Positions 27,170-53,120 of a stretch of DNA of 64,000 bases are shown one piece after another. The number at the start of each line of letters is the position of its first letter. Within the stretch, counting starts at the first letter, position 1. The stretch comes from Diplonema japonicum. Its lineage: Eukaryota; Protista; Euglenozoa: Diplonemea. The notes under the pieces were generated by a model. The model saw only the letters and a program-made list of their open reading frames with translations, searched no databases and had not been told where the DNA came from. The translations under genes and the position numbers were made by a program. The stretch spans positions 744,001-808,000 of the forward strand of contig OZ025654.1 of the NCBI GenBank assembly GCA_964019335.1, read 5' to 3'.

Positions 27170-28364
27170 AGTGCTTGAGGTGATCGTTGTGTTAGGAAGG
27201 TGGTGAGGGAAGAAAAAAAAGAGTAGGGAGAACATAAGAAAAAGAAGAAGTGAAGAGAAAAAAATAAAAAAGAAGGTGTGAGGGAAAAAAAAAAAGAAGG
27301 GGAGAGAATTTTTTTTGGGCGGAGGGGGTACTACTTGTTCTTCATTTGGTGGGCTTTTTTTAAGTATTTTTTTTTTTGTTGCAAATTTCCTTAAGAAGAA
27401 CAAGGATGGGGAAACAGGGTGAGGCAAGGGGGTGGGGGGGATGAAGAGTAGGCTCAATAAAGAAAAGTGTTTATATTTCCTTAAATATCATTGTTCGCAA
27501 AAAAAAGGGGGGGTATGAGAGAGAACAAAAATAAAAGTCCACCCCCTTCATAAAACCGAGAGAAGAGAAAGAAAACCACATTTTAACCAATAAAAAAATC
27601 AACCGAAGAAAAATAAAAGAAAAAGAACAGTGTCTCGCAACAACGTGTGGGGTTTCTTTTTTATATGTTTTTTTTTTATTTTTTTTTTTTGCGAGGAGGT
27701 GAGTGGGAGTTCAAAGCCTTTTTTTTTTTTTTTTTTTTTTTTTCCTTTTTTTTTTTTCTAAGACTTCCTGACATTAGTTCATTATTTCTCTCTTTCTCAA
27801 GTTTTCTTTTCCCCTTTTTGGGCTATGTGAAAGTTGCATTCTATATTTTTTTTTTCTTTCTGAATACGTGCATGGGGGTAGAAAAAAAAAATAAATTTTT
27901 TCCAAAAGCAAAAAAAAGGGGGGGAGAGAAGGGGGGGGGACAGAATAAATAAATAAAAAAGCACTTCCCAGACTGCTACCATATTTTGATTTTCTCGTAG
28001 TTAGTTTTATTTGTCATCCCATCCAACTCCTTCCACACCCTCTGCATGCGAATTGCAAAAGAGGGCAAGGAGTCGTGGGACCAAAATCCTTTTTTTTACA
28101 CTAAGCCAAACGGAAGGGAAAAGAAAAAAAAAAAAAAAACCGAATAAAAAGGGAGAAAAAAAATAAGACCTGGGATCGCGCTGCTTTTCTTCTGTCAAAA
28201 AAAAAAAAAAGATAAACATTTGTAACAAGAAAAAACAAAAAAAAAAAGAGAAGAAAAAAAACCAACAAAGAGAAGAACCTCACCACTTTCCTCTCAATAC
28301 TTCTTTTTTTTTTGTGTGCGTGTTGTGTGCATGTGCTTGTGCCGAAAATAACAAACTATCTTCG

Positions 28365-28585: not shown

Positions 28586-30137
28586 CTACGCCTGCTGCTT
28601 TGCCCTGTGGGCTTTTCTGTCAAAGTGGAAGCTCTCGAAGGCGTCGTCGCCAGCACCTGAAGCAACGCAGACGGCGATGCTGTGCCTGGCGGGAAGGTCA
28701 GTGAACTCGTTTTCGAAGTTCATCTGCTTGGCATCCGGCTTGAAAGGCACCTGCAAAGAAACAGTATTTTCCACCCACACCCTTCGCATACCGGGAGCTT
28801 GCCAGCAAGAAGCGCTTCAAAGTCAAGGTCGTTGAAGAAGGTGTGTGCCTTGAAGGCCTCCACCGTCTGCATACGGTTTTCGGGGTTCCTCTCCAGCAGT
28901 TTGCTGCACAGGTCGCGGGCACCAGCGCTCATGCCTGGGGAAAAAAAAGTGTTGCTTCGTTGTTTACAACTATACCGTCGGGGAAGGTGAGCTTCTTGTT
29001 GAGGATCAGCTCATACATGTCGTTCACGTTCTCGCTGTAGAAAGGAGGCAAGCCTGTCGATTTTTTTTTTTTTTTTTTTTTTTTTTGTTTAGCTGGGTCC
29101 ACACCGGTGATCATCTCATACAGCAGGATGCCCAACGACCACCAGTCGACGGCCCTTCCATGCCCACCGCCTGTCAGGAACTCAGGGGCCAGGTACTCAG
29201 GCGTGCCGCAGAAGGTCTTCGCTTCCTCCTTACCGCTGACCCCAGGCTTGGCAAGACCGAAGTCAGTGATGCAGCAGTTACCAATACTGTCAAGGACGCA
29301 GTTCTCGGGCTTCAGGTCACGGTAGATGATCTTGAGGCCGTGGAGGTGCCCAAGCGCAAGGCCGATCTGCGCAATGTAGAACTTAGCACGCGACTCAGGG
29401 AACGTGCCAATCTGTAAAGTGGTTCAAAACAAAACAAAACAAAAAAAAAAAAAAATGGTTTGTGCTGATACCTGCGACAGGTGGTAGAACACCTCACCAC
29501 CGGACAGGAAGTCGAGGATGAGGAACAGGGAGTCCTTGGTCTGGAAGGCGTAGTGCAGCTTCACGATGAATGGGTGGTTGATCATCCCGAGGATGTTCTT
29601 CTCGGCCTTCATGTGCTCGACAAGTCCTTCCCTGAGGATGAGGTCCTTGGACATGCACTTCATGGCGAAGATCTCTTTGGTGTCCTTCTTCCTGACCTGC
29701 ATGACCTTCCCAAAGGAGCCCTTTCCAACGACGCAGAGGAGGTCGAAGTCATCGAGGCCCGCCTGCTTCCCTTCGAAGACGTCGTCGTCGTCACTGTCAC
29801 CACCGCCTGCAACGGCGATCGAGGCACCACCGTCCTTGCTGTCCTTGATCTTCTGGATCCAGTTGGACTTCTCGGCGTCGCTGGAAGCGAACAGAGTGTA
29901 GGGCTTCGACATGTTGGGTCCGCTGATCGTCCAGGAGAACTTCTTCTTAGGATCCTCCATGACCGTCGTGTCCTTCAGGTTGATCACACCCAGCGGTGCG
30001 TCCCCAGAGCCCGTGGGCTTCGCTTTGTAGTAGTACAGCCTCTTGCTCCTAAGCTCGAACCACCTGTCCTGGTCCCTCTTCATCATGGAGCCTCCTGCCT
30101 TCTTCAAGAACCCACTGCACTCTGCCGCCTCGGCCAT
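28586..30137 (-). CDS. PH-domain AGC kinase (Akt/PKB/SGK-like), 5 exons: 30137-29472, 29411-29105, 29053-28976, 28934-28792, 28750-28586
   Basis: PH domain, GKGSFGKV, YRDLKPEN, DFGLAK, TFCGTPEYLAPE and hydrophobic motif FESFHF. Four GT-AG introns (60, 51, 41, 41 bp) give a 452-aa frame. Confidence 0.95.
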
Positions 30138-30512: not shown

Positions 30513-31196
30513 CTAGGAATATCTGTAAAGTAGATGGGTGGCAGTTGGGTCATCATACAGCGTCACTGGCTTGTGGGCGCGGAACGTGGAAGAGAGGGAC
30601 TCGATGGAACCCTGAAGCGAGATACGACCAACACGTGAGGCAACATAGATAACGGTGGAAGCAGGGGTGTAATAGTGCCTGATGGTGTTCGTGAGGGGGA
30701 GGGTGCAGGCTGTTTCGTAGTTGACATCGGCAGCAAGGAGCACATCGATTGTGGAAGCGACTGGAGGGCTGGCAGCAGCAGGGTGGTTCCAATCCAACAC
30801 AGAGGGAACAATATTTTTAAGCAGGGGCAGGTCACTGTTTACCTGTATGACAGCATGCAGCTCCTTGATCGCAGCAGGTGAAAGATCAGTGGCGTAGACA
30901 GCTTTAGCCCCACACAGTGCCGCTGCAATGCTGGGCAGACCAATTCCACATCCTAATTCCAAACATACTTTCCCCCCAACTAGGTCATCCTCCACCCACT
31001 CTGCCATCATTTTGGACGACTCCCAAATATGCACTCGCTGGGTAGGGACCTTAACAGTCAATCCCTTGATCACTACCTTCGACCACCCTTCTCCGTTGTC
31101 TTCACCTTCTTCCTCTTCAAACAGGTCGAACTCCTCATCGCTGCTCACTGACGGGGTTCGTGATCGCGATGTGTTCGGGGCTTGCTCCACAGCCAT
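30513..31196 (-). CDS. Seven-beta-strand protein methyltransferase (METTL21/EFM family)
   Basis: IWESS, VCLELGCGIGLPSI, ATDL, LDW and LAADVNY motifs. The start codon is uncertain. Confidence 0.88.
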   Translation of the reverse strand: MAVEQAPNTSRSRTPSVSSDEEFDLFEEEEGEDNGEGWSKVVIKGLTVKVPTQRVHIWESSKMMAEWVEDDLVGGKVCLELGCGIGLPSIAAALCGAKAVYATDLSPAAIKELHAVIQVNSDLPLLKNIVPSVLDWNHPAAASPPVASTIDVLLAADVNYETACTLPLTNTIRHYYTPASTVIYVASRVGRISLQGSIESLSSTFRAHKPVTLYDDPTATHLLYRYS

Positions 31197-32064
31197 GTGA
31201 GTGAGGGTATCTGAAGTGTCGGATGAACAGCTGAAAAAGAAACTCAATAACATTTCAGTGTGCATGGTGCTCACTGTGAAGAAAGAGAAAAAACCAATAA
31301 AGAGGAGCAAGCAAAGTAGAGGGGTGAGTTTCAAAACAAGGAAAGGGGCACAATTTTATTCATTGAATTGAACTGTGGCGAGTGAACCACACAAGGGCTG
31401 CACCACCTGGCTGGCCATCTGAAACGTCTCCATACTATCTGTGGCAGCACAGAAGTGTGGCTTAAAAAAAAAAAAAGAAAAGAGGTGGGAAAGAATAATG
31501 ACGTTAGTTGCTTTATAAATCGCCTGGCACACAAGCAACTTTCAGGGCTGACGGCGACCAAGCTGAAAGGACTGAGAGAAGATTACCGGAAAGAAAGGAT
31601 TGGAAGATATAAGTGTCAGCTAGGCACTACGGTGGGTAGCAGGGAACGACCCCAAAAGGGAGCATGACCGAAGCCGAAGGGGAACATGGCTATAGCATTC
31701 TCGCATTCTCTCACAAAAGAAAAAAAAAAGAGACATTTTTCTTTTTTTTTTTTTAAATTCCACCTCCTCTTGGTCTAGCCAGACCGACCCCACCCAGCTG
31801 GGCTGTGTGGAGCCAACGGAAGTGTGTTGAGACGTTCGTGCTTTCGTGTCGGCCTGTGTTATTGTTCTAGCACCTTTGTGACATGGGTATTCTCTTTCCA
31901 CAGTTGGCTAATGGCTTTTTTTTTTTTTTTTTTTTTTTTTTTTTCTCCTTTGGTTGCCAGTCCTCGGGATTCTTTTTTTTTCTTTTTTCTTTTTTTTTTC
32001 TTTCTGGTCCATGCACATGGGGGAAGAGGGTTGTTGGGGTTTATGTTATTTTTTCTTTCTTTCC

Positions 32065-32455
32065 TTTTTTTTTTTTTTTTTTTTTTTTTTCTTTCTATTT
32101 GTTTACACTTGATTTGTTTTCTTCCTGCTGCCTTTTGATTAGCTTGCTAGGTATACGGCTAGTCGGTGGGGGTTAGTCGGTGGGCTCGTCAGGGGGCTTG
32201 TGGGCTTGCCTTGGGGCTTGTAGGTTGTCTATTTGGTGTCCTCGAGGAACCTGATTGCCCTCTTCGGGTCTTTGATGAGGATGTGCTCCAGCGTGTGGAT
32301 GTCATAGTGCTTGTCTCTGGCCGCCTTGGTCGCTGGGCACTCTAGGAGGAGGTGTTGTAGTGTTCTCTGTGTTGTGCCGTCGCATTTTTCGCAGGTGCGT
32401 TGGGTTGTGTACTCCTCTTTGAGCAGGTGGTGATGACCAGTCTTCACCATACTAG
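32065..32455 (-). mobile_element. 3' end of a non-LTR retrotransposon (I/Ingi-like): C-terminal CCHC knuckle, 3' UTR and A tail
   Basis: KTGHH...CEKCDG..RTLQHLLLECPA..AR..., stop at 32229, a C-rich UTR, then an A26 run (T 32065-32090 on +). Confidence 0.7.
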
Positions 32456-33645
32456 TGTCTCTGGCGTACTTACACCTCTCTGGCACCAACGTGAATATGA
32501 GCCTTGAGTACCACAGCGGGATCACTAAGCACAGGCAGCTTCCTACCACCCCTAGAATGGTTTCCCACACGTGATTTTGTTTGTGAATCATCAGTTTTGT
32601 CGAGCAGAACGCGATGCCTTGATACAGGAATACAAACACAAGCATGCCTGCCGCTGGGTGCAGAAGCACACCCCTGCTCGTTGTGATGCTGCAACTCTTC
32701 GCTTTTGCGTAGACAAGCACAGCCACGTAGTGCAGGACGTTGAAGGTGACCACGATGGCCAGGTTGCCCACCACAGCGCCAGACAGCTCGTTACCTGCGA
32801 GCTTGAGTCTAGTTGGATGCAGTACGGTGCTGAGTTTGAAGTGTGCGTCGGGGAGGCATGCACTGTACAGTACCATACCCATCTGCGTGCCGTAAATAGC
32901 AGACGATGGCGAGGTGAACATGCTGGCAGCACCCATAGCTGTCACAATGAAGACTGCCTTTTCGGTTTTGTCAGATGCAGGGAGGTCGAAGGTGGCGTTG
33001 GGCATGGCCTCAGGCTCTGCTTCAACAGGGGAATCAGAGGCCTCGGTTCCTGTGACAGACACCTCTTTTTCCACTGGAACTGAGTACGACAGAGTGCCTG
33101 TAGCAGTTGGTTCAAGATTAGGAGGCAATGTGATAGTAGAAGTGATAGCAGGCAATGTGATAGTGGTAGGCCACGTGGCGGGAGCCAGGGTGATTGCAAC
33201 AGGAGACGGAGACGGCAACATTGAAAACGGGGATATCGAATATGGCAGCAGTGTTGGTAAAGCTGCAAGTGTAGGAGGCGGGGGGGTGGCTGGGGAAACA
33301 GTGGAATGATTGAGGAAGCAAATGTGGGAAGACAACAGCGTTTGCACTGCACCCTGTGGCCACAGGGTACTGGCACAGCACAGGGAGCTTGGTCTGGCAG
33401 TACTCTGAACAGTGCTTGCCCTTCACGCACAAGGTGCCTACTGTGGCACAGGCTGCATAGATGTCTTCAGGCTGCAATGCAGCCCAGAATGGAGTGGCCA
33501 CCCAAGAGTAGCGGGTCATGGGATTGCTAAAACCGATAACACCCTGGGCATGGCCAGTGCTGGAAAGAAGTGCCAACACAGTGACAAGGTCTGAAAGGGT
33601 GGTGATGTGGATGAATGGCACAGCTGAGCTGGGCTGTTTTCTCAG
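32456..33645 (-). pseudogene. Partial duplicate of the 3200-6130 lectin/TM gene with an internal ~670-bp deletion, fused in frame to the LINE tail
   Basis: 32456-33334 matches 3837-4715 (2 substitutions); 33335-33645 matches ~5384-5683 (13 substitutions, 2 indels). Confidence 0.92.
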
Positions 33646-33681
33646 AAAAAAAAATTTGGGGTCAAAAAACTAGTTTGGTGC

Positions 33682-33940
33682 TGAAGAACAGGCATGAAAA
33701 AGGGTTGAGGGAGGACCAGAATGCTTTTTCTTTCATCCCTCTCTGCTTTTTTTACTTTTCGCTTTTTTCAATGTTTTATTCATACTTTTTTTTTTTTTTA
33801 AAAATAAACCTCTTTTTTTTTAGGCTGGCCAGACCATTCTCTCTTCTTTCTTTTTCCCTCCTCCCAACCAGGGGTGTGTGGGGGTGGGTGGGGGAAAGGG
33901 AAAACAGAAATCAACTAAAGTAATTCTCAATTACTCAGGG
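33682..33940 (+). repeat. Composite repeat: inverted copy of 35781-35894, partial copy of the 37200 arm, inverted copy of 35913-35938
   Basis: Direct alignment, e.g. CTAAAGTAATTCTCAATTACTCAGGG versus CCCTGAGTAATTGAGAATTACTTTAG. Confidence 0.85.
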
Positions 33941-34291
33941 TGTGAAAAAATGTGAGAAGACAAGAAAAAAAAGAAGGAAAAAAAAAAAAAGGTAAACACA
34001 TCATGCATATCAAAAAAAAATCAAGGATTTTTTTCTCTTTTTTTTTTCCCCACTTAAAAAAAAAAAAAAAAAAAAAAAAAGGGAGGTTGAAACCCAACTC
34101 ACAGCCTTCACATGGCACCTCCTGTAAGTAAGCTTTGGCTGAAACTAATGTGAGCATGGTAAACAAAAACAAAAAATACACAAGGGTGAGAGGGTAGGTT
34201 TTAAATGATGAGAAGAGTTAACAGAGGAAGCCAAAGAGAGCAGTAGTGAAAAAGTGAATTGACAAGGGGGGGAAAGAGGGAGGAGAAGCAG

Positions 34292-34609
34292 ATGAGGAAA
34301 AGGGGAAAGAAAAAAAAAAGGAAAGGAGAAGAGGTAAAAAACCCACTTCTATTTTTTGGCAAATACTTGTAGATAAAGGACCCACAATTTTGTGGTATGA
34401 GTACTCACCCCCCCTCCCCAAAAGGTGAGAAAGCACCCATTAAAAACTAGCAAGCTATGATTTGCTTGTGTTCTTCTTTTTTTTGACTCTTTGATTTCTG
34501 TTTTCCCTTTCCCCCACCCACCCCCCTGGCTGGGAGGAGGGAAAAAGAAAAAAGAGAGAATGGTCTGGCCAGCCTAAAAAAAAAGAGGTTTATTTAAAAA
34601 AAAAAAAAC
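34292..34609 (-). repeat. Left arm of a ~318-bp inverted repeat (partner 37200-37516)
   Basis: Reverse complement of 37200-37516, identical apart from homopolymer length. Confidence 0.95.
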
Positions 34610-34680
34610 ACAAGGAGGCTCATGGTTCCTGGGGTTGATCAACATGTGGTGCTGAACATCATCCATGGACAGCTGAGGAC

Positions 34681-34830
34681 ATCCCAAGTCACTGTGGTAT
34701 TGCAGGGAATGAAGTGGCTGACAGGCTGGCAGCAGCGGGTGTGAAGGAACAACAGAGGCAGCCAGTGAGCCTTGGAGCAGCGAAAAACAAGCAAATACAA
34801 CATTTGATGTGGAAAGCAGAAACAACAGCT
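34681..34830 (+). mobile_element. RNase H C-terminal fragment of a non-LTR retrotransposon
   Basis: IPSHCGIAGNEVADRLAAAG matches the W(V/I)P(S/G)HxGIxGNExADxLA motif; absent from the ORF track. Confidence 0.8.
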
Positions 34831-35938
34831 TGGGGTGGTCCACAAGAGGACTGGAGAGGTATTGGCACTGGTACATGCTGTTGAGGGATCGAAGGTGCCA
34901 TGTTCCACAGGACTTCTGCAAGGTGCTGGTGGTCCTCCTGCCTTGTCTGCTCCAGCCACTGCTCCAACTGCTGTGTCCTCTGCTCCATTACGGTGATGGC
35001 TGCCTGCACCTGGCCTTCCAGCCCACCTCCTGCCTGAGCTATGCAGTACACCTCCTCCTGTGTCTGCTGTGTCCCCTCCTTTGCAAGCCGGTGTGCCTGC
35101 TGGGCCTCTGCTCCTGCCTGCTCAACCCTCCTGAGGGTGAGGGAGTGCTCTCCCTCTAGCACCTGCAGCCTTGAGATAGCCTCAGAGAGGCATCCTTCCA
35201 GGCCTGCCTTTGTTGCAGCAGACCCACCCTTCTCATCCACAATCATCTTGGCAATCTCCCTTGCCTCTGCCTGTGCAGCCTCAAACAGGTGCTGCTGCTG
35301 CCTTGCCTTTGCTGCCAGCTCCAAGCTGTGGCCACACACCTCGTCCACCTCTCCTCTGACACCGTTGAGGACAGAGGCCATCCTCTGCTGGTGCTGCCTC
35401 TGCTCCTCCAGGCCAGATGTGAGGTCTTCCACATCTTCCTGGACATTGGTTGTGCGTCCCTGGTCCTTCCTTCCCCTCTTGGGTGTGCCTGTGCGTGTCC
35501 TTATTGCAGGTAGGAGGGGTGTCACCTCCACCACCTGCTCTGCAAAATGGGCAAAGGCATTTACTTCACCTGTTCCTTCCTCAGCCAGATAGGCACCTGC
35601 ATCATTGACACCCACTGTGCCAACTACGTGCTCTTCAGCACCGTCTGGTCCCCTCAAGTGCACCTGCACCCTCTGCCCATTCAACGCTTCGTACTGCAAC
35701 ATTTTCCTGAGCAAACAGGGGATTTCGGACAGATCACTGCCAGAAAAACCACAAAAAAGGATCAATGAATATAAGAGTATAAAAGTATGAATAAAGCATT
35801 GAAAAAAAAAAAGCGAAAAGTAAAAAAAAGCAGAGAGGGATGAAAGAAAAAGCTTTCTGGTCCTCCCTTGACCCTTTCTCACACCTGTTCTTCACACGTC
35901 CCAGGTGGTACTCCCTGAGTAATTGAGAATTACTTTAG
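34830..35938 (-). mobile_element. Repeat-family leader plus coiled-coil ORF (ATG 35702), possibly a retroelement ORF1/gag-like gene, truncated
   Basis: MLQYEALNGQRVQVHLRGPDG..., a long coiled coil and a P/Q tail. Other copies at 37845-38500, 33682-33790 and 40015-40395. Strongly CpG-depleted. Confidence 0.55.
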
Positions 35939-36131
35939 CAATATCAGCCTTGGTAAGGGCACTACTGGGGGGAATTTTTTTTTTTTTTGCAAAAAAATAA
36001 AAAAAAAGTCCATTTTGAGGGTGCCTGACTTTAACAACACAAGGGTATAAACATCTTGGGGCCTTACTCAACAGACAGTTTAAGCTATCTCTTTCTTGAA
36101 GTATTTTTTTCCAAGATATACAAAAAAGAAG

Positions 36132-36759
36132 TTTCCCTACAAAATACCAACCTAGTTTTTAGTAACAGGTTAAAAATAGGTTACCAACTACCTTCACGAA
36201 CTTGTGGTTGAAAGCATGTGAAAAGAGCTTAGAGAAGATGAAGTATTCTATAACTAGGTTATAGAGTCAGTTTACTATGGTTTACCAGAAAGCTTTATGA
36301 ATTTGTGGATAAAACCATGTGGAAAGAGTTGGGGGAATACCAACCTAGTTTTTAGTAACAGGTTAAAAAATAGGAAGTAGTTGTCTTGTCAAAATCATGG
36401 TTGAAAGCATGTGAAAAGAGCTAAGAGAAGATGAAGTATTCTATAACTAGGTAAAAGAGTCAGTTTACTATGGGTTACCAGCTAGCTTCACAAACTTGTG
36501 GTTGAAAGCATGTGGAAAGAGTTGGGGGATGATTTTCCTATGGAATACCAACCTAGTTTTTAGTAACAGGTTAAAAATAGGTTACCAACTACCTTCTTGA
36601 ACTTGTGGTTGAAAGCATGTGAAAAGAGCTTAGAGAAGATGAAGTATTCTATAACTAGGTTATAGAGTCAGTTTACTATGGGTTACCAGATAGCTTCATG
36701 AACTTGTGGATAAAACCATGTAGAAAGAGTCTGAGGATGATTTTCCCTATGGAATACCA
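36132..36759. repeat. AT-rich tandem satellite, about 3 copies of a ~208-bp unit built from two ~100-bp related halves
   Basis: AATACCA recurs at about 36143, 36336, 36544 and 36753; a GGTTACCA...TTGTGG.TGAAAGCATGTG core recurs about every 100 bp. Confidence 0.92.
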
Positions 36760-36776
36760 TCTTTTAATATCTCTCC

Positions 36777-37199
36777 ATGATGGCAGCTGAGCTAGCAGAT
36801 GGGAGGGACTCCTACGATGCCATGCCAGAAGGAGCCAACCTGGACACGAACATGTGGTGGAGGTCACTCTTGGGCAACCCAGTGGTGGCATACCAACTGA
36901 GGAGGCTGATTGCAGGAGTGGTGTTTACAGTCTACCCAGGAGTGTGGGGCATGGCACAGGAACCAAACAACCCACTGCAGCACCTCTGCAACGTGTGTGA
37001 GGAATGGTTTGGCAGCTACACGGAGGTGCTGGAACACGCCCTCTGGTGATGCAAGCCAGGTGTCACAGTGTGGAGCAAGATGGAGTATGCAAACCTGGAC
37101 CTGGCAGCTATGCCAAAGGTGACGAGGCTCCATGGGGTGGTGCCCAGAGGCTGCCAAGACAAGCCAAGGGCCTTACTGGTGCAGAAGTACCTGCTGGAG
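36777..37199 (+). pseudogene. Degenerate coding fragment, probably transposon-derived
   Basis: GC-rich, CpG-poor, protein-like frame (..NLDTNMWWRSLLGNP..LCNVCEEWF..) with a stop, wedged between the satellite and the inverted arm. Confidence 0.35.
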
Positions 37200-37516
37200 G
37201 TTTTTTTTTTTTAAATAAACCTCTTTTTTTTTAGGCTGGCCAGACCATTCTCTCTTTTTTCTTTTTCCCTCCTCCCAGCCAGGGGGGTGGGTGGGGGAAA
37301 GGGAAAACAGAAATCAAAGAGTCAAAAAAAAGAAGAACACAAGCAAATCATAGCTTGCTAGTTTTTAATGGGTGCTTTCTCACCTTTTGGGGAGGGGGGG
37401 TGAGTACTCATACCACAAAATTGTGGGTCCTTTATCTACAAGTATTTGCCAAAAAATAGAAGTGGGTTTTTTACCTCTTCTCCTTTCCTTTTTTTTTTCT
37501 TTCCCCTTTTCCTCAT
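37200..37516 (+). repeat. Right arm of the ~318-bp inverted repeat
   Basis: Reverse complement of 34292-34609. Confidence 0.95.
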
Positions 37517-37895
37517 AAAACACTGATAAACGCAAATGATAGAGGGAGGTAGGTGGGAGGGACACTTGTGAGGGGTTCCAATTAAAGGAGTGAGCAACAC
37601 CTGGTCTGCCTTGGCAGTGCCTAAGTGTTGATGTTGGGTGGTACTCAAGCTTGGATCTGCAGTGTAGGGTTATTCCATGCTTTGGGATTGGCTTGGAGGG
37701 CTTGTTCCCTACCCCCATGTCACTCTTGCATGTTTCTTTTCCCTTTCGTTTTTTTTTTTTTTTTTTTTTAAAGAAATGTCGATGATTAATTATGATGGGG
37801 GGTAGGTAGATTAGATGAGAAAAAAAATAAGAAACCCCCCCCCCTCATGGAGAAAGTGCACCTTGCTGGTGCTGCTGAGGAAACTTGTAGGTGTG

Positions 37896-38500
37896 TTGGG
37901 GTGGTCCACAAGAGGACTGGAGAGGTATTGGCACTGGTACATGCTGTTGAGGGATCGAAGGTGCCATGTTCCACAGGACTTCTGCAAGGTGCTGGTGGTC
38001 CTCCTGCCTTGTCTGCTCCAGCCACTGCTCCAACTGCTGTGTCCTCTGCTCCATTACGGTGATGGCTGCCTGCACCTGGCCTTCCAGCCCACCTCCTGCC
38101 TGAGCTATGCAGTACACCTCCTCCTGTGTCTGCTGTGTCCCCTCCTTTGCAAGCCGGTGTGCCTGCTGGGCCTCTGCTCCTGCCTGCTCAACCCTCCTGA
38201 GGGTGAGGGAGTGCTCTCCCTCTAGCACCTGCAGCCTTGAGATAGCCTCAGAGAGGCATCCTTCCAGGCCTGCCTTTGTTGCAGCAGACCCACCCTTCTC
38301 ATCCACAATCATCTTGGCAATCTCCCTTGCCTCTGCCTGTGCAGCCTCAAACAGGTGCTGCTGCTGCCTTGCCTTTGCTGCCAGCTCCAAGCTGTGGCCA
38401 CACACCTCGTCCACCTCTCCTCTGACACCGTTGAGGACAGAGGCCATCCTCTGCTGGTGCTGCCTCTGCTCCTCCAGGCCAGATGTGAGGTCTTCCACAT
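37896..38500 (-). repeat. 605-bp direct repeat of 34830-35434 (second copy of the coiled-coil ORF)
   Basis: Constant offset of 3066 bp; apparently identical. Confidence 0.95.
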
Positions 38501-38907
38501 TCCTTTGCTTTGAACTACTTTGCTTGGGATAATCCTGTGGTGAGCTGTGGCAGACAGGAGGCCTTCTCACTTCACTCTGTGTACTGCTTGCTTTTCAATA
38601 CGTTCTTTACCGGTTCACACTGCCCACAGTGCATGCTCCGTTATGCTGGTCATCGTCTGGGATCGGTGGTTGCAAACGTCACACTAGTGCTGGTTTCCAC
38701 ACCAGGCCATCCGTTTCCCGTGTGACCACGAAGCACACCAGGCGGTGGACGCCCGTGTGCAAGCCGGTCACAACGTGCATGGTGATGATGGACACAGCAG
38801 CGTGCAAGAGCGATGTGAACTGTGCCTGGGACTGCAGGTACCCTTAAATGACACACCACAGGTACCCTTAAATGTCTCTTTTCTTTTTCTTTTTTTCTTT
38901 TTTTTTA

Positions 38908-39770
38908 TTTAACTCCACCAGAATTTTCATGGGTGGGAGTGAAAATAAGAATTCACTTTATTTCACTCCTGACTTTATTTTCACACTCCGGCTTCTAAAA
39001 GAAATTAGGCCCAGGAGTGAAAAAATTCTGATAGCGTTAAAATAGAAATATTATTTCACTCCTGGGCCTAATTTAAGCAAAACCCTCCAAAAATTCCTAC
39101 CAAGGTTCCTTTGGGATGGGCAAGAACCCGACTGCACAAGAGGACGCAGCAGGGTTCACCCCCTTCCAAGAGTCATACGAAAAGGAGTGGGCACACTTTT
39201 GTGTGTTTCATAATTATAGGAAGGAAAAGAAGGGCCCGTCCGAAAGAGGAGGATTCTATTCTCTATTTCAGCGACATGAACAAGCAAGGCCTGCTGCCAG
39301 TTCAGTCTGGGCGGCTTATTCAAGGCTAAACTCGGTTGTGAAGAGGAATTACAACAAGCAGTTGCAAGACCACCTCCGACTAAAGGTCCCCCTCAAGAGG
39401 TTCCAAGAAGGCGAGTCAACAAAAAAGGCGAACATCTTACCCAAGAGCAAATGACAGAATTCTTTAGCGAGGTATGGCATCGTCTGCCACGCTTATGCAG
39501 CGTTGATGTTTGCAGGAAACATGTGCACTACCGAGGCACATATCCGACACCTGTTGTAATTGGTACCACCTGTACCTCCCACCCACTCAAATTTTGCTGT
39601 CATTAAATAAAATATTGTATTTGTGAATAACAGATTGATGATTTCACTTGTGGTGGCAGTTTTGACTCGTTAAACGTTATAACACTCGCTTCGCTCGTGA
39701 TATAACCGTCAAAACCACTGCCACCACACATGAAATCATAGGATCTTATATTCACTAAATAAATAGTTAT
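38908..39770 (+). mobile_element. Degenerate Crypton-like tyrosine-recombinase element with hairpin ends
   Basis: Frameshifted pieces SYEKEWAHF / PKEEDSILYFSDM / ASSVWAAYSRLNSV..LKRFQEGESTKKANI / TQEQMTEFFS / AYAALMFAGNM. A 21-bp perfect inverted repeat at 39002-39022/39054-39074 and a long hairpin at 39619-39760 centred on ACTCGCTTCGCTCGT. Confidence 0.55.
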
Positions 39771-39798
39771 TCTTTTCTTTTTCCTTTTGGTTGGGAAT

Positions 39799-39915
39799 GG
39801 TACTCTCCGACCTACTAGGATGCTAGTAGGAGCCCTTGAAGGGTGCCTCTTGCCTGATGAGGACAGCACCTAGAGGAGTTGCAAGAGTGAGTCCGAAACT
39901 GAGAGATACCTAGTA
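39799..39915 (+). ncRNA. Hammerhead-ribozyme-like motif, probably degenerate
   Basis: CTGATGA-GGAC-(26 nt)-GTCC-GAAAC core; candidate stem III GGTACTCTC/GAGAG(A)TACC. Stem I and the cleavage triplet are not cleanly formed. Confidence 0.35.
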
Positions 39916-40014
39916 CTGCCACGAAAGTTCGGTCCAGGAGGGCCTTATTCCCTGTGCAGCTCTCACGCAGAGCAAAAATGATGTCCCTTCACTGCATGCC
40001 AATTTGAGTTTTTT

Positions 40015-40395
40015 TCATTCCTCTCTGCTTTTACTTTTGATTTCTTCAATGTTTTTATTCATACTTTTATAGTCTTTTATTCATTGATCCTTTTTTGTGG
40101 TTTTTCTGGCAGTGTTACTTACCATACAGTGATCTGTCCGAAATCCCCTGTTCGTGAGCCCACCCCTGCCTGGGCCATGTGGTACTCCTCCTGCGTCCAC
40201 TGTGTCCCCTCCTTTACAAGCTTGCTGTGCCTCTGCCCCTGCTTTCTCAACCCTCCTGAGGGTGAGCGAGTGTTCCCCTCCAGCACCTGCAACCGTGATA
40301 TAGCCTCTGAAAGGCACCCTCCAGGCCTGCATTTGTCGCAGCTGATCCGCCCTTCTTCTTCCTCAGCCAGAAAAGTTCCTGCATCATTGACACAA
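40015..40395. repeat. Diverged, rearranged third copy of the leader/coiled-coil element
   Basis: 40015-40152 matches the leader in + orientation, with a 17-bp insert bounded by CAGTG; 40155-40395 matches ORF pieces in - orientation. Confidence 0.8.
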
Positions 40396-40442
40396 CACCA
40401 ATGCCAATTTTAAAAACACACACGTTTACAAACAGGAGAAAC

Positions 40443-42734
40443 ATGAGGCAATTTACAGTGCTACTGCTGGCGCTGTCAGCAGGTGCATGGAATCTCAAGG
40501 AGAGGCCATGGATGGACAATCGTCTTCCGGTTGACCAGCGTGTTGCTGCACTCCTACCAAAGTTGAATGTCGAGGAACTGTCTGCACAAGTACGAGCACC
40601 CAATTCTGATAACGCAGACACGCTGATCGCACTGTATGCCAACCTTAGTGTTGGGACGAGCACGCTACTGTCGATTGCTGATATAAACAAGGTGCAGGCC
40701 GCAGTGCTGAACAACAGCAGGTGGGGTATCCCAGTCGCTTGGCAGCATGAGTCACTTCACGGGGGATGCTTCGGTGGAACTGTGTTCCCCATGCCTCTGT
40801 CCTTGGGTTCTACATGGAACACATCACTGCTGCTAAGCATCTACGATGCCATCGCCAACGAGACTCGTGCCTGTGGGGCAAACATTGCCTTCGCGCCTGT
40901 TATCAACCTTTTCAACGACCCGCGCTATGGCAGGTTCGAAGAGGGTCTCTCGCCCGACCCCGCACTCACAGCATTGTACACAAGGTACACAGTGCTCGGG
41001 TTGCAGGGATCCATTGCAGGGAATGCTTCGACCTACCTACCACCGGGTAAGGTGGTCTCACTTGGGAAGCACTTCATGGGATATGGAGGCGGATCGGGTG
41101 GGCTGAACTCCGGAATGCTCCATGCAAGTGAAAGGGAGGTAAGGGACGTCTACCTGAAGCCATGGAGGGAATTCGCTAAGTGCGGCGGCAGAGGGGCTAT
41201 GCCCTCGCACCAGACTGTCCTTGATGTCCCCATGCATGCTAATGACTATATGACTAACCAAGTGTTCAGAAAAGAGCTTGGTTTTGGAAATGGGCTCACC
41301 ATCTCCGACTGCAACGACGTTGGTGTACTGGTAAACTTCAGAGTGGCACACAACGCCTCAGATGCTGCTGCAAAGGCCCTCAAGGGTGGCGTCGACCAGG
41401 ATCTGCAATGTGGACAAGAAACATACACATACACTAACATTAAAGCAGCTCTCGACAGCGGGCTCCTTGACTTGTCAACACTGCAGACTGCAGTGAAACA
41501 CGTGCTCACTATGAAGTTCGCATCTGGCCTGTTTGAGAACCCGTATGTTAACCCTGCTGGAATGGATCACCTCGATCCCCCAGCATACAGGGCGCTTGCA
41601 AGAGAGGCTGCAGAACAATCGACGGTGCTGCTGAAGAATGCTGGCAACGCACTCCCACTTCCGGCAAACGCAAACTGGGCTAACACTGCGATGGTCGGGT
41701 ACCTTGCATCTGATGCTGCATACTACTCCCTGACGGGGCCATATTCTTCCCTCGGGGCGCCCATTGAAACGTACAACAGCACATTCTTCCCAATGCACGT
41801 CAAGTACTCGGAAGGCGCTCACCCCGACACCCCTGCTGACCCTGCCATGATTAACAGTGCTGTGCAGCTAGCGAAGTCGGCTGAGCGTACACTCCTTTTC
41901 TTAGGCGACTCGATCAACACATGTGGCGAGTGGATGGACAGGTCTGACCTCGACCTGCCTGGCGGGCAGACAGAGCTACTCACCCAGATGGTTGCCAGCA
42001 AGGTGCCAAACCTCATTCTGGTCCTTGTCGGGGGGCGACCTGTCACTTTCGGTGTAAACAACACACTGCTGAACGGTGTGAGTTCTGTATTGTGGGTGGG
42101 CCGTCCTGGTGAGGCAGCAGGGTCTGCCTTGTGGAACATTTTGACAGGTGTTACGAACCCATCAGGCAAGCTGCAAGCTTCATGGGTCAAAAATGTAGGG
42201 CATGTTGGGAGCGGTGCTACACCGTTCCAGCAGCCTATTGTCGGGAAGTGGGCAGCAAACCAACGGACGCCCGCAGACCCCGACGGGAGGGTCTATGATA
42301 ACTACGTGTTCGATCCTAACGGTGAGGCGTCGCCCCTGTTCCACTTCGGTTATGGGCTGTCCTACACGACATTTAAAGTGGACAAGATGACAGTGATGCC
42401 CTACAATACCCAGTCAGGGACTGTTACTGTGATGTACGATGTCACCAACACAGGGAGTAGAGCAGGCGCGGAAGTCACACAAGTGTACATTATAGACCCT
42501 ATTGGTGCACCTGTTGTCCGGCCCTGGAAGAGGTTGGTGCAGATTTCTAAGGAGTACCTGGAAGCAGGTGCAAGCACTACAGTGTCAGTCATCATCTCCT
42601 ACGAGGACCTTGCCCTCACCTCACTCGACATGAAGAGCATGACAGTACGGAGCGGCATCTACGCTGTACGTGTAGGCACCTCCTCTTACGATGACCAGGT
42701 TGCAGGCTACTTCACCTATGGGGCCGTTCCATGA
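40443..42734 (+). CDS. Secreted glycoside hydrolase family 3 (beta-glucosidase/xylosidase)
   Basis: Signal peptide, ESLHG, FPMPLSLGSTWN, DPRYGRFEE, LGKHF, ISDC nucleophile, FHFGYGLSYTTF and an Fn3-like C-terminus. Confidence 0.95.
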   Translation: MRQFTVLLLALSAGAWNLKERPWMDNRLPVDQRVAALLPKLNVEELSAQVRAPNSDNADTLIALYANLSVGTSTLLSIADINKVQAAVLNNSRWGIPVAWQHESLHGGCFGGTVFPMPLSLGSTWNTSLLLSIYDAIANETRACGANIAFAPVINLFNDPRYGRFEEGLSPDPALTALYTRYTVLGLQGSIAGNASTYLPPGKVVSLGKHFMGYGGGSGGLNSGMLHASEREVRDVYLKPWREFAKCGGRGAMPSHQTVLDVPMHANDYMTNQVFRKELGFGNGLTISDCNDVGVLVNFRVAHNASDAAAKALKGGVDQDLQCGQETYTYTNIKAALDSGLLDLSTLQTAVKHVLTMKFASGLFENPYVNPAGMDHLDPPAYRALAREAAEQSTVLLKNAGNALPLPANANWANTAMVGYLASDAAYYSLTGPYSSLGAPIETYNSTFFPMHVKYSEGAHPDTPADPAMINSAVQLAKSAERTLLFLGDSINTCGEWMDRSDLDLPGGQTELLTQMVASKVPNLILVLVGGRPVTFGVNNTLLNGVSSVLWVGRPGEAAGSALWNILTGVTNPSGKLQASWVKNVGHVGSGATPFQQPIVGKWAANQRTPADPDGRVYDNYVFDPNGEASPLFHFGYGLSYTTFKVDKMTVMPYNTQSGTVTVMYDVTNTGSRAGAEVTQVYIIDPIGAPVVRPWKRLVQISKEYLEAGASTTVSVIISYEDLALTSLDMKSMTVRSGIYAVRVGTSSYDDQVAGYFTYGAVP

Positions 42735-43397
42735 CCTTGATCTTTCCCCTTTTTCCTACGTCAGCTCTATTATTATTATTATGAAGGATCGTAATGCAAT
42801 AGAGGGACTGAGGGAAAAAAAGAAAACGAAAACGAAAACCTTTTTTTAAAACCCGCCGTTTTAGGGTTTGCTCCGCGGAAAACGATGAATGGAAAGATGT
42901 AATAGATAGATAAGAAAAAAAAAAAAAAAAAAAAAAAGAAATCAAAAAAAAGAAGGTAACTCTTTTGTTTATCATAAGCAGCAGCTTCGATATCACTTTT
43001 CTTTTACTATTGTATTTAAGACTCCCTTTCTTTCCAGCCCCCGTTCCCGTGTTGCCCCCCCTTTTTTTTTCATTGTGCCTTTTATTAACCCAACTCCGTT
43101 GACCCAGATTTTCCTTAAAGACACCTGAGTCCTTTTTTCTTCTTTTCTCCTTTCTTTCTTCTTCAGAGAAATGTCGAAAAGATTTCCAGAGGTCAACTGA
43201 GCAAACTTGACGAAAAACGAAGAAACGTGCCCTCCAGGGAAGTTCAATAAAATGGAAAATAGAGGTTAGCCGCTATCTAGCAGGCTGTCAAATTAGGCTC
43301 AGGAAAAGAAAGTGTGTGCAGGAGGTGGGGAAACGGTGCTGCCACCCAGCCACCTATTACCACCCAGTTTTTTTTTTTTTAAATTGAATATTGAATA

Positions 43398-43979
43398 CTG
43401 TAAAACAGAAAATGCCGGACGGACAAAACGTCCTTTGCCTCGTGTGTGGAGTTGATGTCCCGCACCCCTTGGGAGTGAGCGGGCAACCGCTTTGTTAATG
43501 CCAATGGGCGGACAAACGTCTGGGTTTCTGTCGCGTCCAACGAGAAGCGATTAACAATAGGAGGGGGTTTTATTTGGTTTTTTCTCCCCCCCCACTTTTT
43601 TTAACCCAAAGCATCCCATTACCCCCTTTATTCACGTTTTCGCAGTTCGTCGTTTTCATATCAGTCTACCCTCAACAGTTAACAATCACACAGGTTATGG
43701 TTCTAAGTGTGGGACAAAGCTGCCTCCGCAGCTGATACACAAAGGTAGGGCTGAGCCCCCATCTGGACAACAGTACCCACATGCTCCGTCCTGAGAGTGG
43801 TACCCCTGCAGACTGGAGCCTTATGGCTTCCCAAACACTGGTCGCATCAGACGAAGATAGTGTTCTCCCTATAAGCCCCTCATCTGAAAAAAATGCTGAG
43901 GAGAAAAATCCGGAGTGACCCGGGGGGAAAAAAGAAAAGCCCCAGATATTTTTCTTTACCAGATTTTTTCGCTTTACAG
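43398..43979. mobile_element. MITE-like element with TA target duplication (Tc1/mariner-type ends)
   Basis: TA|CTGTAAAACAGAAAAT ... ATTTTTTCGCTTTACAG|TA; related copy at 7402-7543; no ORF. Confidence 0.65.
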
Positions 43980-44064
43980 TATTTCTTTATTTGAAACACC
44001 CTCTACTTCGCTTGCTTCTCCCCCTTGTTGGTTCTATGTTTTGTGAACAAAAAAAGGGGAAAAC

Positions 44065-44109
<45 letters not shown>

Positions 44110-44353
44110 ATTTATTCATGAAAAATCAAATTACCGTGGAGTCTCGTTTTTTAACGAGTGGTTTTGCTTCACTCGCTTCGCTCATGGAGCTAAAGAAAAA
44201 AAAAAAAAAAAAAAAAAAAAAGAAAAAAGTTAAAAAGATGCTAAAGTGCGAAGAACACGGCACAAGAAAAGCTTTCTTTCTTTCCTCTCTGCTTGGTTTC
44301 CTTATCTCGTTTGTGACCCCAAGAAGGTGTGGAAAAAATAAAAGAAAGAAATA

Positions 44354-45112
44354 ATGATGTATGATGTCGCGGTCTCTGAATTGGGGGTGTCTTTGAACGA
44401 GAAGTACAACTTCAACTTGAAAAGCCTGGAAATGCTGTGGGAAGCTTCAGCAGATGAGAACACAGAAGACGTGAGCATCGTGCCAGAATGGGACTCCGAT
44501 GTGATCCTGCAGCGGAAGTGGCCTGTCAATGCAGGTATCAACATGTGCGACTTGGAATGGTCCCCTTTTGCTGCTGACGAAGTAGAGTGCATCATGACAA
44601 CTATGCAGCAAACACCATTGTTACCCGATCCAGTACTTATGATTGGGATTCAGACTGAGCTGAGGTACTCAGAGTCACCTGTGTACGTGACTCCCATTTT
44701 CTGTGTAGGCAGCCACAAGCTGGTGTATGATCTTGCAGACGATATTAGTATGGTGCTGACTCTAATGGACGACAACCTCGTCTACCCCTTGCCCAAGCAC
44801 GTGAAGAACCATGTGCACATGAAGGTGGCAGACTCCGAAACCGCCATCCTTCCTACTATCCTTGTAGACATCATTCGCTTTGCAACCATCGCCCACAAGG
44901 AGAATACAAAGGCGTACATCCACTGTGTGGCAGGTGTGAATAGGACGATGCTTGTTATGTGTGCGATCTTGATGGTTTGCCACCGGCTCCCGTTGCACAT
45001 GGCCGTTCAGTATGTGCGTGCGAAATGCAACTACACAATCCTGTTGAACAAAACGTTCAGAAGGGAGCTGGCTACCCTGGAAAAAATACTGAATGAACAC
45101 ACTTGCAGCTAG
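44354..45112 (+). CDS. Dual-specificity protein phosphatase
   Basis: HCVAGVNRT (HCx5R), upstream general-acid VADSE, and downstream AVQYVRAK..LLNKTFRREL. Confidence 0.88.
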   Translation: MMYDVAVSELGVSLNEKYNFNLKSLEMLWEASADENTEDVSIVPEWDSDVILQRKWPVNAGINMCDLEWSPFAADEVECIMTTMQQTPLLPDPVLMIGIQTELRYSESPVYVTPIFCVGSHKLVYDLADDISMVLTLMDDNLVYPLPKHVKNHVHMKVADSETAILPTILVDIIRFATIAHKENTKAYIHCVAGVNRTMLVMCAILMVCHRLPLHMAVQYVRAKCNYTILLNKTFRRELATLEKILNEHTCS

Positions 45113-45362
45113 CAGGGTGGGTGTTTTTTTAGTGCAATGGGTCTTCACCCCCCAACCCTTTTTTCCCCCCTCGCGCTACTTACGTATTCGAACTCAATGG
45201 AGAGAGGGGGTTTTTTTTCCCCCCCTCTTACAGTTCTCGTCTGCTTCCTCAAAAAGAATAACTTTTTACTTATTTTACAAACCGCAGGGCATTCCTAACT
45301 AGCCTTATGTATGCAACGTGGCATGAACTATCTACTAACTTCTTTGAACAAAAAAAAGGAAG

Positions 45363-45393
<31 letters not shown>

Positions 45394-45889
45394 AACAAAA
45401 GCGCTTCTCAGATAGCTATAAAACCCTGAGGGGAAAATCACTGGACTGCTGAAGCAGACAGGTTTTCCCGTCGGAACTTTGTTTTACGATACAACCAATT
45501 CTTTCCGTCCCTTTCCCCCCTGTTCCAACTTTCCAGTTTGTAATTGATCAGCGCATGGCAATCTTTTCTAGGACCGTCCCGTGTGATTTCAAAAAAAATA
45601 AGCTCCTCTCGTTTTCTTCCTTCTTTGTGTCCTCCCTTTTGTCGCATTTATGAAGAGGTAGTGAGCCTAGACAGCGGGTAGAAAGAATATAAAGTCGCAG
45701 ATGCCCAGAGGCCAGTCCCGCCCTGTGCAGACCCTTGGGGACTATTTCGCTTTCCCCACATCCTTTCTGTTGCCTGTTCTTTCTCTATTCTTCTATGCCT
45801 CTTTTCCTACTCTTTTTTTTCCCCCCTCTCCTTTTTTTCTTGATGTGCCACAGCACTGTTGCACATTTAGTGATTCCTTCCCATCCTCA

Positions 45890-46326
45890 AATGCCACCTC
45901 AAGACTGCAAAACGGAAAGAATCCTGGCAACCTGTGTTGACATATATCTTTGCAGTTCCCGTGATCGTGGGGAATCTGACCGCTTTGTTCCATCTGCTTT
46001 ATACACGTAGGCTACATAGGAAACTAGCAGAAACAGCAATGTACTCTTATGGGCTGTCACTGCTGCTTGGCACTACGTGATGTCGTTGCAGGAGGGTATC
46101 CGGTTCTGGCCTGGTTTTGTAGTGATCATCGATATATTTGTTTGGTTTTGTAACCAAGGTAAGTATGGTTCGCAATCTTGTAACTATGGTTGCCCTTTGG
46201 TTCGTCCTCTTAGGGGTTGAGAGCTACTTGAGGTTTGGACTGTTTGATGCATCTCATTTTACTACACAAAAGTACCGGCGAGAGCTGTGTGACCGCGTCC
46301 TAAAACTTTATCCTATGTTCTCTTAG
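45890..46326 (+). pseudogene. Decayed multi-TM gene fragment
   Basis: Hydrophobic segments over shifting frames (..RFWPGFVVIID.., ..VALWFVLLGVESYLRFGLFD..RRELCD) with stops. Confidence 0.4.
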
Positions 46327-46622
46327 CCGCCGCAGCAAGTGTAGCTGTTTTCCCGCTTCCTCGGTCCCGCCTTCATGATCACCAAAGCTCTGTGCAAGCA
46401 CGCTGTAGTGCTCTCCACCCACGGCACTACAGCGTGGGTCCCTTATAACGAGAAGCTCTCATTCACGCCCATCACACCCCCTGCTCAGGCAGCGTCGTAT
46501 TATTGCTGATTCAAACCCAGGGGATTTTGTACTGGATGCGCAGGCTGATGCCATTGTGACCTGTTTCTGCAGGATCACCATCTTCTTTTCCCACCCTACA
46601 CCCTTTCCCTTTTTTGCTACCC

Positions 46623-53070: not shown

Positions 53071-53077
53071 GGGTAAT

Positions 53078-53120
<43 letters not shown>

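Follow-up and report, generated by a model that had tools for sequence, protein, structure and literature searches.

The divergent strand switch on chromosome 7 of Diplonema japonicum raises the question of what occupies the space from which two gene arrays diverge, and of how this DNA came to be so poor in CG dinucleotides. Few marine eukaryotes are more abundant than diplonemids, and for this group we know of no publication that deals with centromeres, replication origins, or DNA methylation. The genome paper on D. papillatum lists DNMT homologues and goes no further on methylation, the genome note on D. japonicum leaves telomeres, centromeres, and methylation unmentioned, and no methylome or description of a CpG domain was found for diplonemids in the literature searched. 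A first-pass annotation of the window (the whole stretch of 64,000 nucleotides analyzed here) had proposed a CpG-eroded, silenced, and possibly centromeric island at the switch, which would be of a new kind if the host were a diplonemid, as it is.

The gap between the gene arrays

The switch itself is borne out, minus-strand genes extending up to position 31334 and plus-strand genes starting at 40401; the last gene on the left is that of a lysine methyltransferase and the first on the right is of the GH3 family (Table 1). An outlying gene on the left of the switch, at 508 kb of the chromosome, is also on the minus strand. Between the arrays there are degenerate retroelements (an RNase H relic and two retroposon pieces) and pseudogene fragments; a Pfam search of the island revealed no host-gene domains except in the copied gene fragment, and no tRNA or Rfam RNA was found in or near it. 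As part of the explanation preferred below, positions 33,335–38,500 are probably the core of the only divergent strand-switch region of chromosome 7.

Table 1. Features of the strand-switch region, in window coordinates
Feature	Position	Strand	Evidence or remark
Lysine-methyltransferase-like ORF, first gene of left-hand array	30513–31334	-	Pfam Methyltransf_16, E = 1e-14
Retroposon C-terminal zinc-knuckle relic, in-frame fusion behind gene fragment	32229–32455	-	CxxC...H...C at ORF end; no Pfam hit
Copy of gene segment 3837–4715 (C-type-lectin gene, transmembrane part)	32456–33334	-	877/879 (99.8%) identical; Pfam DGF-1_C-like
CpG-eroded block	33335–38500 (5.2 kb; chr7:777.3–782.5 kb)		36 CpG, o/e 0.13, GC 47%, TpG/CpA excess
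Continuation of gene copy, homologous to 5384–5600, inside decayed block	33335–33562	-	Alignment to donor
Noncoding repeat modules	33640–34300		Shared with many other chromosomes, at their one locus of island type
Left arm, inverted pair of ~550-bp repeat	34292–34618	-	99% complementary to 37190–37516
RNase H tail of LINE-like retroelement, CpG to TpG changes	34620–34792 (RNase H relic, 34639–34881)	+	Pfam RNase_H weak, E = 0.017
42-nt piece of longer repeat	34792–34833	+	Marks 53 loci on 52 chromosomes; TG here in place of the single CpG
Orphan coiled-coil ORF family, copy 1, decayed	34830–35900	-	Sequence comparison
Three tandem units of ~208 bp, GC 35%	36132–36737		Only 1 further genome copy, chromosome 97
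Dispersed retroposon-like family, fragment	36775–37201	+	~9–10% diverged from young copies
Right arm, complete ~550-bp repeat	37190–37750	+	Pairs with left arm; 327-nt arms, 99% identity
Coiled-coil ORF fragment, copy 2	37896–38500	-	100% identical to 34830–35434 (605 bp); end is right edge of decayed block
Abundant dispersed ~900-bp element, copy	38880–39790		Mildly decayed compared with 11 copies elsewhere
Coiled-coil repeat, third piece, diverged	40157–40393	-	Abuts GH3 start codon
GH3 beta-glucosidase, first gene of right-hand array	40401–42734	+	Pfam; 55% identity to D. papillatum protein

The nested inverted and direct repeats described in the first-pass annotation are present, as are the retroposon pieces, and the RNase H relic, although weak at this locus, is clear in related copies (Pfam E = 4e-12 in L010 and 9e-9 in L012). 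Two other components were not confirmed: the supposed AT-rich satellite is not a satellite array, consisting of just the three 208-bp units, and the supposed tyrosine recombinase relic gives no such match in Pfam, the interval 38.5–40.4 kb being without any Pfam match. The orphan coiled-coil ORF family resides in islands and has an intact frame of 592 aa on chromosome 114; it belongs to no Pfam family, and no homologue was found among 5.8 billion proteins. The retroposon-like family represented at 36775–37201 comprises two subfamilies and at least 40 copies, of which some are 5'-truncated. The 42-nt piece was considered as a specially conserved motif and rejected, since its flanks are about equally conserved in four other loci and it is merely part of a longer repeat. 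A simple relic of telomere-to-telomere fusion was also rejected, since the repeat arms are oriented relative to one another in a way that does not fit it; this orientation differs between chromosome ends (C88 versus C47), and nothing can therefore be concluded from it. No match to TTAGGG x5 was obtained, in a search from which such repeats may have been withheld because they resemble human sequence.

CpG loss and its direction

The block between 33,335 and 38,500 retains its 36 CpG where 217 would be expected at the window background (Poisson P = 2e-52), and its observed/expected ratio (o/e) compares with 0.76 in the remaining window; about 85% of its CG dinucleotides are gone, the left and right edges are both sharp, and nowhere else across the 64 kb does o/e fall below 0.3 in 500-bp windows. 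The hand counts of CpG in the first-pass annotation are exact (11 in 34861–35700, 1 in 36000–36760, and 35 in 29521–30120) and the erosion that it described is real, but the extent that it claimed, 32,065–40,400, is too wide, because 32,456–33,334 is CpG-normal and 38,880–39,790 has decayed only mildly. Depletion affects all 16 NCGN contexts, down to 0.05–0.22 of normal, with no preference for flanking bases. The TpG/CpA value rises from 1.12 to 1.32 in the block, dinucleotides other than CpG and TG/CA are unchanged, and the GC content is not raised (47% versus about 50%).

There are 9 substitutions between the continuation of the gene copy inside the block (33335–33562) and the donor, which lies 29 kb away; 8 of them are CG in the donor and TG or CA in the island, with none in the reverse direction. 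For the whole gene copy, 2 of 38 CpGs have been lost outside the block and 8 of 12 inside it (Fisher P = 3e-5), and the two differences between the CpG-normal part, 32456–33334, and segment 3837–4715 are both CG in the donor and TG in this copy. It should be noted that the left edge of the decay falls exactly at the structural junction of the gene copy (4715|5384 in the donor), so that a difference in age, and not in chromatin, may be what separates the two parts. In the retroposon piece at 36775–37201, all 3 CpGs in the 35 nt tested have been lost, whereas all are kept in 17 of 17 dispersed copies on 16 chromosomes; the ~900-bp element at 38880–39790 has lost 8–10 CpGs, as against 0–2 changes in the opposite direction, relative to 11 copies elsewhere, which have a normal CpG o/e of 0.8–1.0. 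The 17 retroposon copies elsewhere have the appearance of young elements, and may be undecayed even if methylated; the ~900-bp family, 5–12% diverged and CpG-normal elsewhere, argues against such an effect of age without excluding it.

The aligned copies show a decay that, as far as they record it, is CpG-specific, directional, and confined to the locus. The comparisons also indicate that CpG loss depends on position rather than on element family, with age as a confounding factor for one family, and the alternative raised in the first-pass annotation, the same CpG loss at every transposable element, does not apply, the 17 and 11 dispersed copies of two families having kept their CpGs.

The eroded block is thus very probably the scar of local cytosine methylation, its CpG decay being a historical footprint. 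An intact DNMT5 gene is present on chromosome 108, with methylase (PF00145 DNA_methylase, 75.3–76.0 kb) and SNF2 (PF00176, 72.1–73.2 kb) domains in a single frame of 2140 aa that matches the structure of C. neoformans DNMT5 (PDB 7R76, E = 5e-143); a euglenozoan DNMT5 is already on record (PMC12344493). The footprints and the intact gene together give good support to the silenced, 5mCpG-marked domain that had been proposed. What we infer is threefold: the switch region of chromosome 7 is almost certainly CpG-methylated today, the responsible enzyme is most likely DNMT5, and the block is presumably transcriptionally silent. The footprint in the sequence points to past action of CpG methylation in a euglenozoan, restricted to a defined domain.

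Fungal-type RIP, or another mutator triggered by duplication, might take the place of maintained methylation, as the material is repeated and CpG transitions stand ~20- to 200-fold above other changes, which is high for plain decay of 5-methylcytosine. However, RIP hits both copies of a duplicated sequence, and here the donor gene has kept the CpGs that the island copy has lost; many-copy dispersed repeats are untouched, and the decay is seen on both strands and at CpG only, with no TpA excess (rho 0.52 versus 0.56) and no bias for CpA to TpA changes. Such a mutator is already contradicted by the evidence and is highly improbable. Very little probability also attaches to a CpG-poor composition imported with foreign or already CpG-poor elements, or to an assembly artifact, although the ~550-bp repeat is CpG-poor in every copy wherever it is found and the near-identical 879-bp duplicate is unusual, short public contigs stopping at its end. 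Three unrelated sequences that have CpG-normal relatives elsewhere have decayed after arrival, and unique segments of the island were found without differences in the runs of three studies. One contig bridges the right edge at 38,500, short contigs otherwise breaking at repeats and leaving the island unspanned, and the assembly, made from HiFi and Hi-C data, was manually curated and has a QV of 59 (PMC13598402).

The explanation that we prefer, and hold to be likely, is of a gap between two outward-running gene arrays at the chromosome 7 switch, in which fragments of dead retroposons would have accumulated and been rearranged, together with an orphan family of pseudogenes and noncoding repeats specific to islands. 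The gap would have been CpG-methylated over evolutionary time, most likely through maintenance by a DNMT5-type CpG methylase, and deamination of 5-methylcytosine would have converted the lost CG dinucleotides to TG or CA.

Sister loci and the chromosome plan

Four repeat probes identified island-type loci on 70 of 118 chromosomes, the other 48 being without a match; 69 chromosomes have one locus each and chromosome 66 has two, through a 50-kb duplication (Poisson P = 3e-5 for at most one chromosome with two loci). The probe from 33640–34300 gave 71 matches, all of them at loci known from other probes or on new one-locus chromosomes. Many such islands per chromosome, which the first-pass annotation had envisaged as an alternative, are thus not what the 70 mapped chromosomes contain, islands of this repeat type occurring once per chromosome. 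The sister loci have the same repeats, are equally CpG-poor (o/e 0.07–0.4), and have sharp edges; 40 of 70 (57%) are within 20 kb of a chromosome end, and on chromosomes 20 and 64 such repeats are located away from the apparent switch.

Among 109 sampled genes, 104 point away from the locus of their own chromosome (p = 4e-25). On 10 of 10 chromosomes sampled on both strands, all minus-strand genes lie to the left of all plus-strand genes, and no sampled chromosome has a convergent gene order, each having a single divergent switch. This plan already explains the presence of one locus per chromosome, a count that fits a nontranscribed, repeat-collecting gap, a region where transcription starts in both directions, or a replication origin equally well, and therefore cannot separate a centromere or origin from a mere transcription gap. 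The simple chromosome plan that is offered here, with all genes running outward from one island, is tentatively extended to the proposal that every chromosome may consist of one or two giant gene arrays diverging from a single CpG-methylated island of 5–10 kb that is its centromere, its sole replication origin, or both. If true, this would provide the first candidate for a diplonemid centromere and, among euglenozoans, the first chromatin domain to be defined by 5mCpG of the DNMT5 type. The locus and its sisters supply precise coordinates for public Hi-C (ERR12765141, ERR12765143), HiFi, and RNA-seq data, and hence a centromere or origin candidate that is testable without new wet work.

Candidate functions and known systems

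A role of the island as centromere or origin is plausible. The more specific proposal that it additionally serves chromosome 7 as a small regional centromere of the trypanosomatid kind, built on degenerate retroelements and marked by 5mCpG as in Cryptococcus, is rather doubtful. Its apparent occurrence once per chromosome among those mapped, its position at the strand switch, its retroelement content, and a size of 5–10 kb are in line with what has been published on the centromeres of T. cruzi, T. brucei, and Leishmania (PMC1868937, PMC13508446), DNMT5-dependent CG methylation marks transposon-rich centromeres and subtelomeres in C. neoformans (10.1101/149385), and chromosome-long transcribed arrays leave almost no other nontranscribed site for a kinetochore. 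On the other hand, the count per chromosome is accounted for as above, the many loci near chromosome ends resemble subtelomeric heterochromatin (although telocentric chromosomes are possible), and the island has neither a satellite array nor the raised GC content of T. cruzi centromeres. The island might also be the main replication origin, a bidirectional platform for Pol II initiation, or both, gene orientation then representing co-direction of transcription and replication, a reading that we regard as possible but on balance unlikely. The outward orientation of the sampled genes and the lack of convergent order favor it, and at sister locus L006 the edge of CpG decay and the first ORF are no more than about 50 bp apart, but a heavily methylated nest of repeats would be an odd promoter, and initiation would therefore have to be at the edges. 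Such co-direction has been proposed in Leishmania for the single early origin at a strand switch on each chromosome. Diplonemids would not, to our knowledge, be expected to rely on the KKT kinetochore of kinetoplastids.

The methylated gap favored here resembles the centromeric strand-switch domains of trypanosomatids, including those of T. cruzi chromosomes 1 and 3 (PMC13508446, PMC1868937), in its location between directional gene clusters; these domains likewise contain retroelements in a degenerate state (a LINE with RNase H in the present case), are gene-free, and measure ~5–16 kb, and they occur once per chromosome, as the islands seem to do on the chromosomes mapped. Unlike T. cruzi centromeres, the D. 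japonicum island is not GC-rich and, unlike those of T. brucei, it is without an AT-rich array; no VIPER or tyrosine recombinase relic was confirmed in it, and it is a candidate centromere only. The CpG-decay footprint is a feature of the D. japonicum island, the T. cruzi centromere map being silent on CpG (PMC13508446). In C. neoformans (10.1101/149385), as here, the genome encodes a DNMT5 that combines a methylase domain with an SNF2 domain, the mark (here its scar) is restricted to CG, and the domains are transposon-rich, gene-free, and both internal and subterminal. Methylation was measured in the fungus and is inferred in D. japonicum, however, and the fungal domains are tens of kb long, compared with islands of 5–10 kb, in an unrelated lineage with unrelated transposon families. 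The classical single-switch chromosome is chromosome 1 of Leishmania major, for the switch region of which the roles of promoter, origin, and centromere have been proposed. There also, one short region separates two long, divergent gene arrays, but in D. japonicum a single switch seems to be general among the chromosomes sampled, and the region is filled with decayed repeats and CpG-eroded.

Extent and make-up of the CpG-eroded block

The window, positions 744,001-808,000 of chromosome 7 in an assembly totaling 62,535,345 bases (G000:C7:744,001-808,000), places the island ~88 kb from the right end of the chromosome, because chromosome 7 is 0.87 Mb long. At 250-bp resolution, CpG erosion runs from ~33,335 to ~38,500 and is sharp at either edge. 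The block, at chromosome positions 777,335-782,500, contains 36 CpG, as against 217 expected at the window background observed/expected ratio (o/e) of 0.76 (Poisson P=2e-52); o/e lies between 0.66 and 0.92 across 182 other 5.2-kb windows of the 64-kb window, and a scan of the same sequence in 500-bp windows found none below 0.3 outside the block. The first-pass annotation had proposed a candidate centromere or heterochromatin domain at 32,065-40,400. Its three CpG counts are exact on recount and the divergent switch that it described, with genes on the minus strand to the left of the island and on the plus strand to the right, holds, but the 250-bp CpG profile confines the eroded block to ~33,335-38,500, a narrower stretch than the span proposed. 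Independent evidence on the host comes from the GH3 gene at 40401-42734, whose product shares 55-59% identity with proteins of diplonemids. Of the public contigs examined, none spans the island, but one short contig bridges 38,500, and unique pieces of the island are matched in three studies.

The island is a mosaic built from fragments of dispersed families (see table). The nested repeats reported earlier are present, with inverted arms of 327 nt at 99% identity and direct copies of 605 bp at 100%, and the RNase H relic is genuine, deriving from a LINE-like element whose better copies reach Pfam RNase_H with E=4e-12. The supposed AT-rich satellite is ruled out, since its 208-bp unit has just one further copy in the genome, and the tyrosine recombinase of the proposed YR relic was not found in the island. 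The orphan coiled-coil ORF belongs to no Pfam family, and a search of 5.8 billion proteins yielded no homologue; searches for tRNA and Rfam RNA found none at the island.

Features of the island, related loci, C5-methylase genes and chromosome ends (plain coordinates are window positions; C, chromosome; L, genome segment)
Feature	Position	Strand	Detail
Tandem repeat			3 x 208 bp
Orphan coiled-coil ORF copies	34830-35900 and 37896-38500		
Retroposon-like family fragment	36775-37201		family includes 5'-truncated members
Coiled-coil frame	L002:1467-3242 (C114:~87.3-89.1 kb)		unbroken, 592 aa, within CpG-poor island, o/e 0.28
piggyBac-like DDE transposase relic	L028:484-936 (C14:~551.0-551.4 kb)		DDE_Tnp_1_7 E=1.5e-6, in another CpG-poor island
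DNMT5	chromosome 108		one gene; methylase and SNF2 domains in single 2140-aa frame
M.HhaI-like gene and DNMT2-like paralogues	L033 (C74:154.2-155.7 kb), L034, L035, L036		one like bacterial M.HhaI (N-terminal extension ~150 aa; E=3e-38 to HhaI), three DNMT2-like
(GGGTTTGC)n	C1:1-383, C4:1-247	+	
(GGGTTTGC)n	C2:~1,000.0-1,000.8 kb, C3:~999.8-999.97 kb	-	
(GGGTTTGC)n	L056:1-23		

Decay of CpG in place

In 47 kb of depleted sequence pooled from many chromosomes, CpG is the only dinucleotide that is low (rho, its observed/expected value, 0.12 vs 0.79); all 16 NCGN contexts are affected, and TG/CA is raised while TpA is not. Comparison of related copies gives the direction of change. Over a 35-nt stretch of a retroposon piece the island reads GGTGGCATACCAAC; elsewhere the family has 17 copies spread over 16 chromosomes, and every one of these has GGCGGCGTACCGAC. 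The copy of a ~900-bp element at 38880-39790 has lost 8-10 CpGs, as against 0-2 in the reverse direction, and 11 dispersed relatives have o/e of 0.8-1.0. A 42-nt marker (34792-34833) is found in 63 copies that carry CG, TG or CA at its sole CpG, with few differences elsewhere. At the left edge, 33335-33562 differs from gene segment 5384-5600 by nine substitutions, eight of which are CG in the donor and TG or CA in the island, with no reverse changes and no transversions, whereas the adjoining 32456-33334 is identical to 3837-4715 at 877 of 879 positions, both differences being CG to TG in the island copy; CpG loss is thus 8 of 12 in the former and 2 of 38 in the latter (Fisher P=3e-5).

This island pattern is the signature that deamination of CpG 5-methylcytosine would leave; fungal RIP, inherited composition and strand-specific editing were also considered, and the decay fits none of them. 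Equal CpG loss at every transposable element, which the first-pass annotation had set against its own proposal, does not apply, as dispersed copies of the same families keep their CpGs.

The 879-bp duplicate (99.8% identity, donor 29 kb away) is part of a C-type-lectin/TM gene, omits 668 bp of the donor (4716-5383) and, at the island edge, continues in the same reading frame into the zinc-knuckle tail of a retroposon; public short contigs stop precisely at 33,334. It represents either a recent gene conversion or transduction, or an assembly issue.

Sister loci and gene orientation

Sister loci were mapped with exhaustive pattern searches (two) and BLAST-type searches (three), which cover loci sharing the repeats of the island; ~270 kb of the genome was read directly. 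They lie on 70 chromosomes, 69 having one and chromosome 66 two; they are CpG-poor to the same degree, with edges as sharp. Besides the chromosome 7 island (777-783 kb), examples are found on chromosome 5 (738-748 kb), chromosome 18 (719-729 kb) and chromosome 30 (238-243 kb). Random placement of 70 loci on 132 records would give ~13 records with at least two, as compared with the one observed (P=3e-5). The other objection, many islands per chromosome, therefore does not apply to loci of this kind. The chromosome 66 loci (C66:414.8-415.6 kb and 465.1-465.8 kb) have identical hit patterns exactly 50,224 bp apart, which points to a recent segmental duplication of ~50 kb with the island inside it. 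On the published lengths, the distance to a chromosome end is <20 kb for 40 loci out of 70, 20-100 kb for 18, including that of chromosome 7, and greater for ~12.

Orientation was sampled with 162 kinase, SNF2 and DNMT genes. On locus-bearing chromosomes, 104 of 109 genes point away from the mapped locus (p=4e-25), all five exceptions being on chromosome 20, where plus-strand genes lie at 88 and 222 kb but the island-type repeat is at 481 kb, and on chromosome 64, where minus-strand genes lie at 236-277 kb but the repeat is at 138 kb. Minus-strand genes all lie left of plus-strand genes on 10 of 10 chromosomes sampled on both strands, and the mapped locus is within the switch interval on all six of those that have one. 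Sampled chromosomes have at most one strand switch, always divergent, and neighbouring sampled genes share a strand in 70 pairs and oppose in 10. The orientation and locus data together identify the island as the single divergence point of chromosome 7, and as a member of a class that, on the 70 chromosomes where it was mapped, is found once on all but one.

Many chromosomes resemble one array beginning near one end. The left array of the window includes one open frame of 4122 aa (15089-27457, minus strand). Intergenic homopolymer runs of 25-60 nt track gene strand (9134-32094 vs 42915-62242), with T-runs on the plus strand beside minus-strand genes and mostly A-runs beside plus-strand genes; apart from two T-runs at 53.1-53.4 kb, they read as sense-strand poly(A) between genes.

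Candidate methylases, function and chromosome ends

The D. japonicum genome contains five C5-methylase genes. DNMT5, which matches the C. neoformans DNMT5 structure with E=5e-143, is a plausible candidate for the enzyme behind the predicted methylation of the island. A euglenozoan DNMT5 is already on record (PMC12344493), and for D. papillatum DNMT homologues alone were reported (PMC10161547); no diplonemid methylome was found in the literature searched. GCGC is the most depleted context of the islands (0.05 of normal, 6 sites); an added GCGC activity would fit this depletion, the counts being small.

The best-supported reading is that the island, at the only divergent switch of its chromosome, would be a CpG-methylated domain that escapes transcription and collects repeats. 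That neither objection applies does not prove the candidate centromere; because each chromosome has just one switch, a count of loci would look alike for a centromere, an origin, a start platform and a mere safe harbour for insertions. The closest known systems are the centromeric strand-switch domains of trypanosomatids (PMC1868937, PMC13508446) and, in Cryptococcus, the centromeres and subtelomeres, which are rich in transposons and methylated by DNMT5 (10.1101/149385), methylation at the D. japonicum island being predicted from CpG decay.

An 8-nt unit, (GGGTTTGC)n, with 6112 overlapping matches, is present at chromosome ends; TTAGGG x5 has no match in the genome. The 5' end of its G-rich strand is at the terminus, a polarity opposite to that of canonical TTAGGG telomeres, and it is either a subtelomeric satellite, the true telomere being missing or masked, or an unusual telomere.
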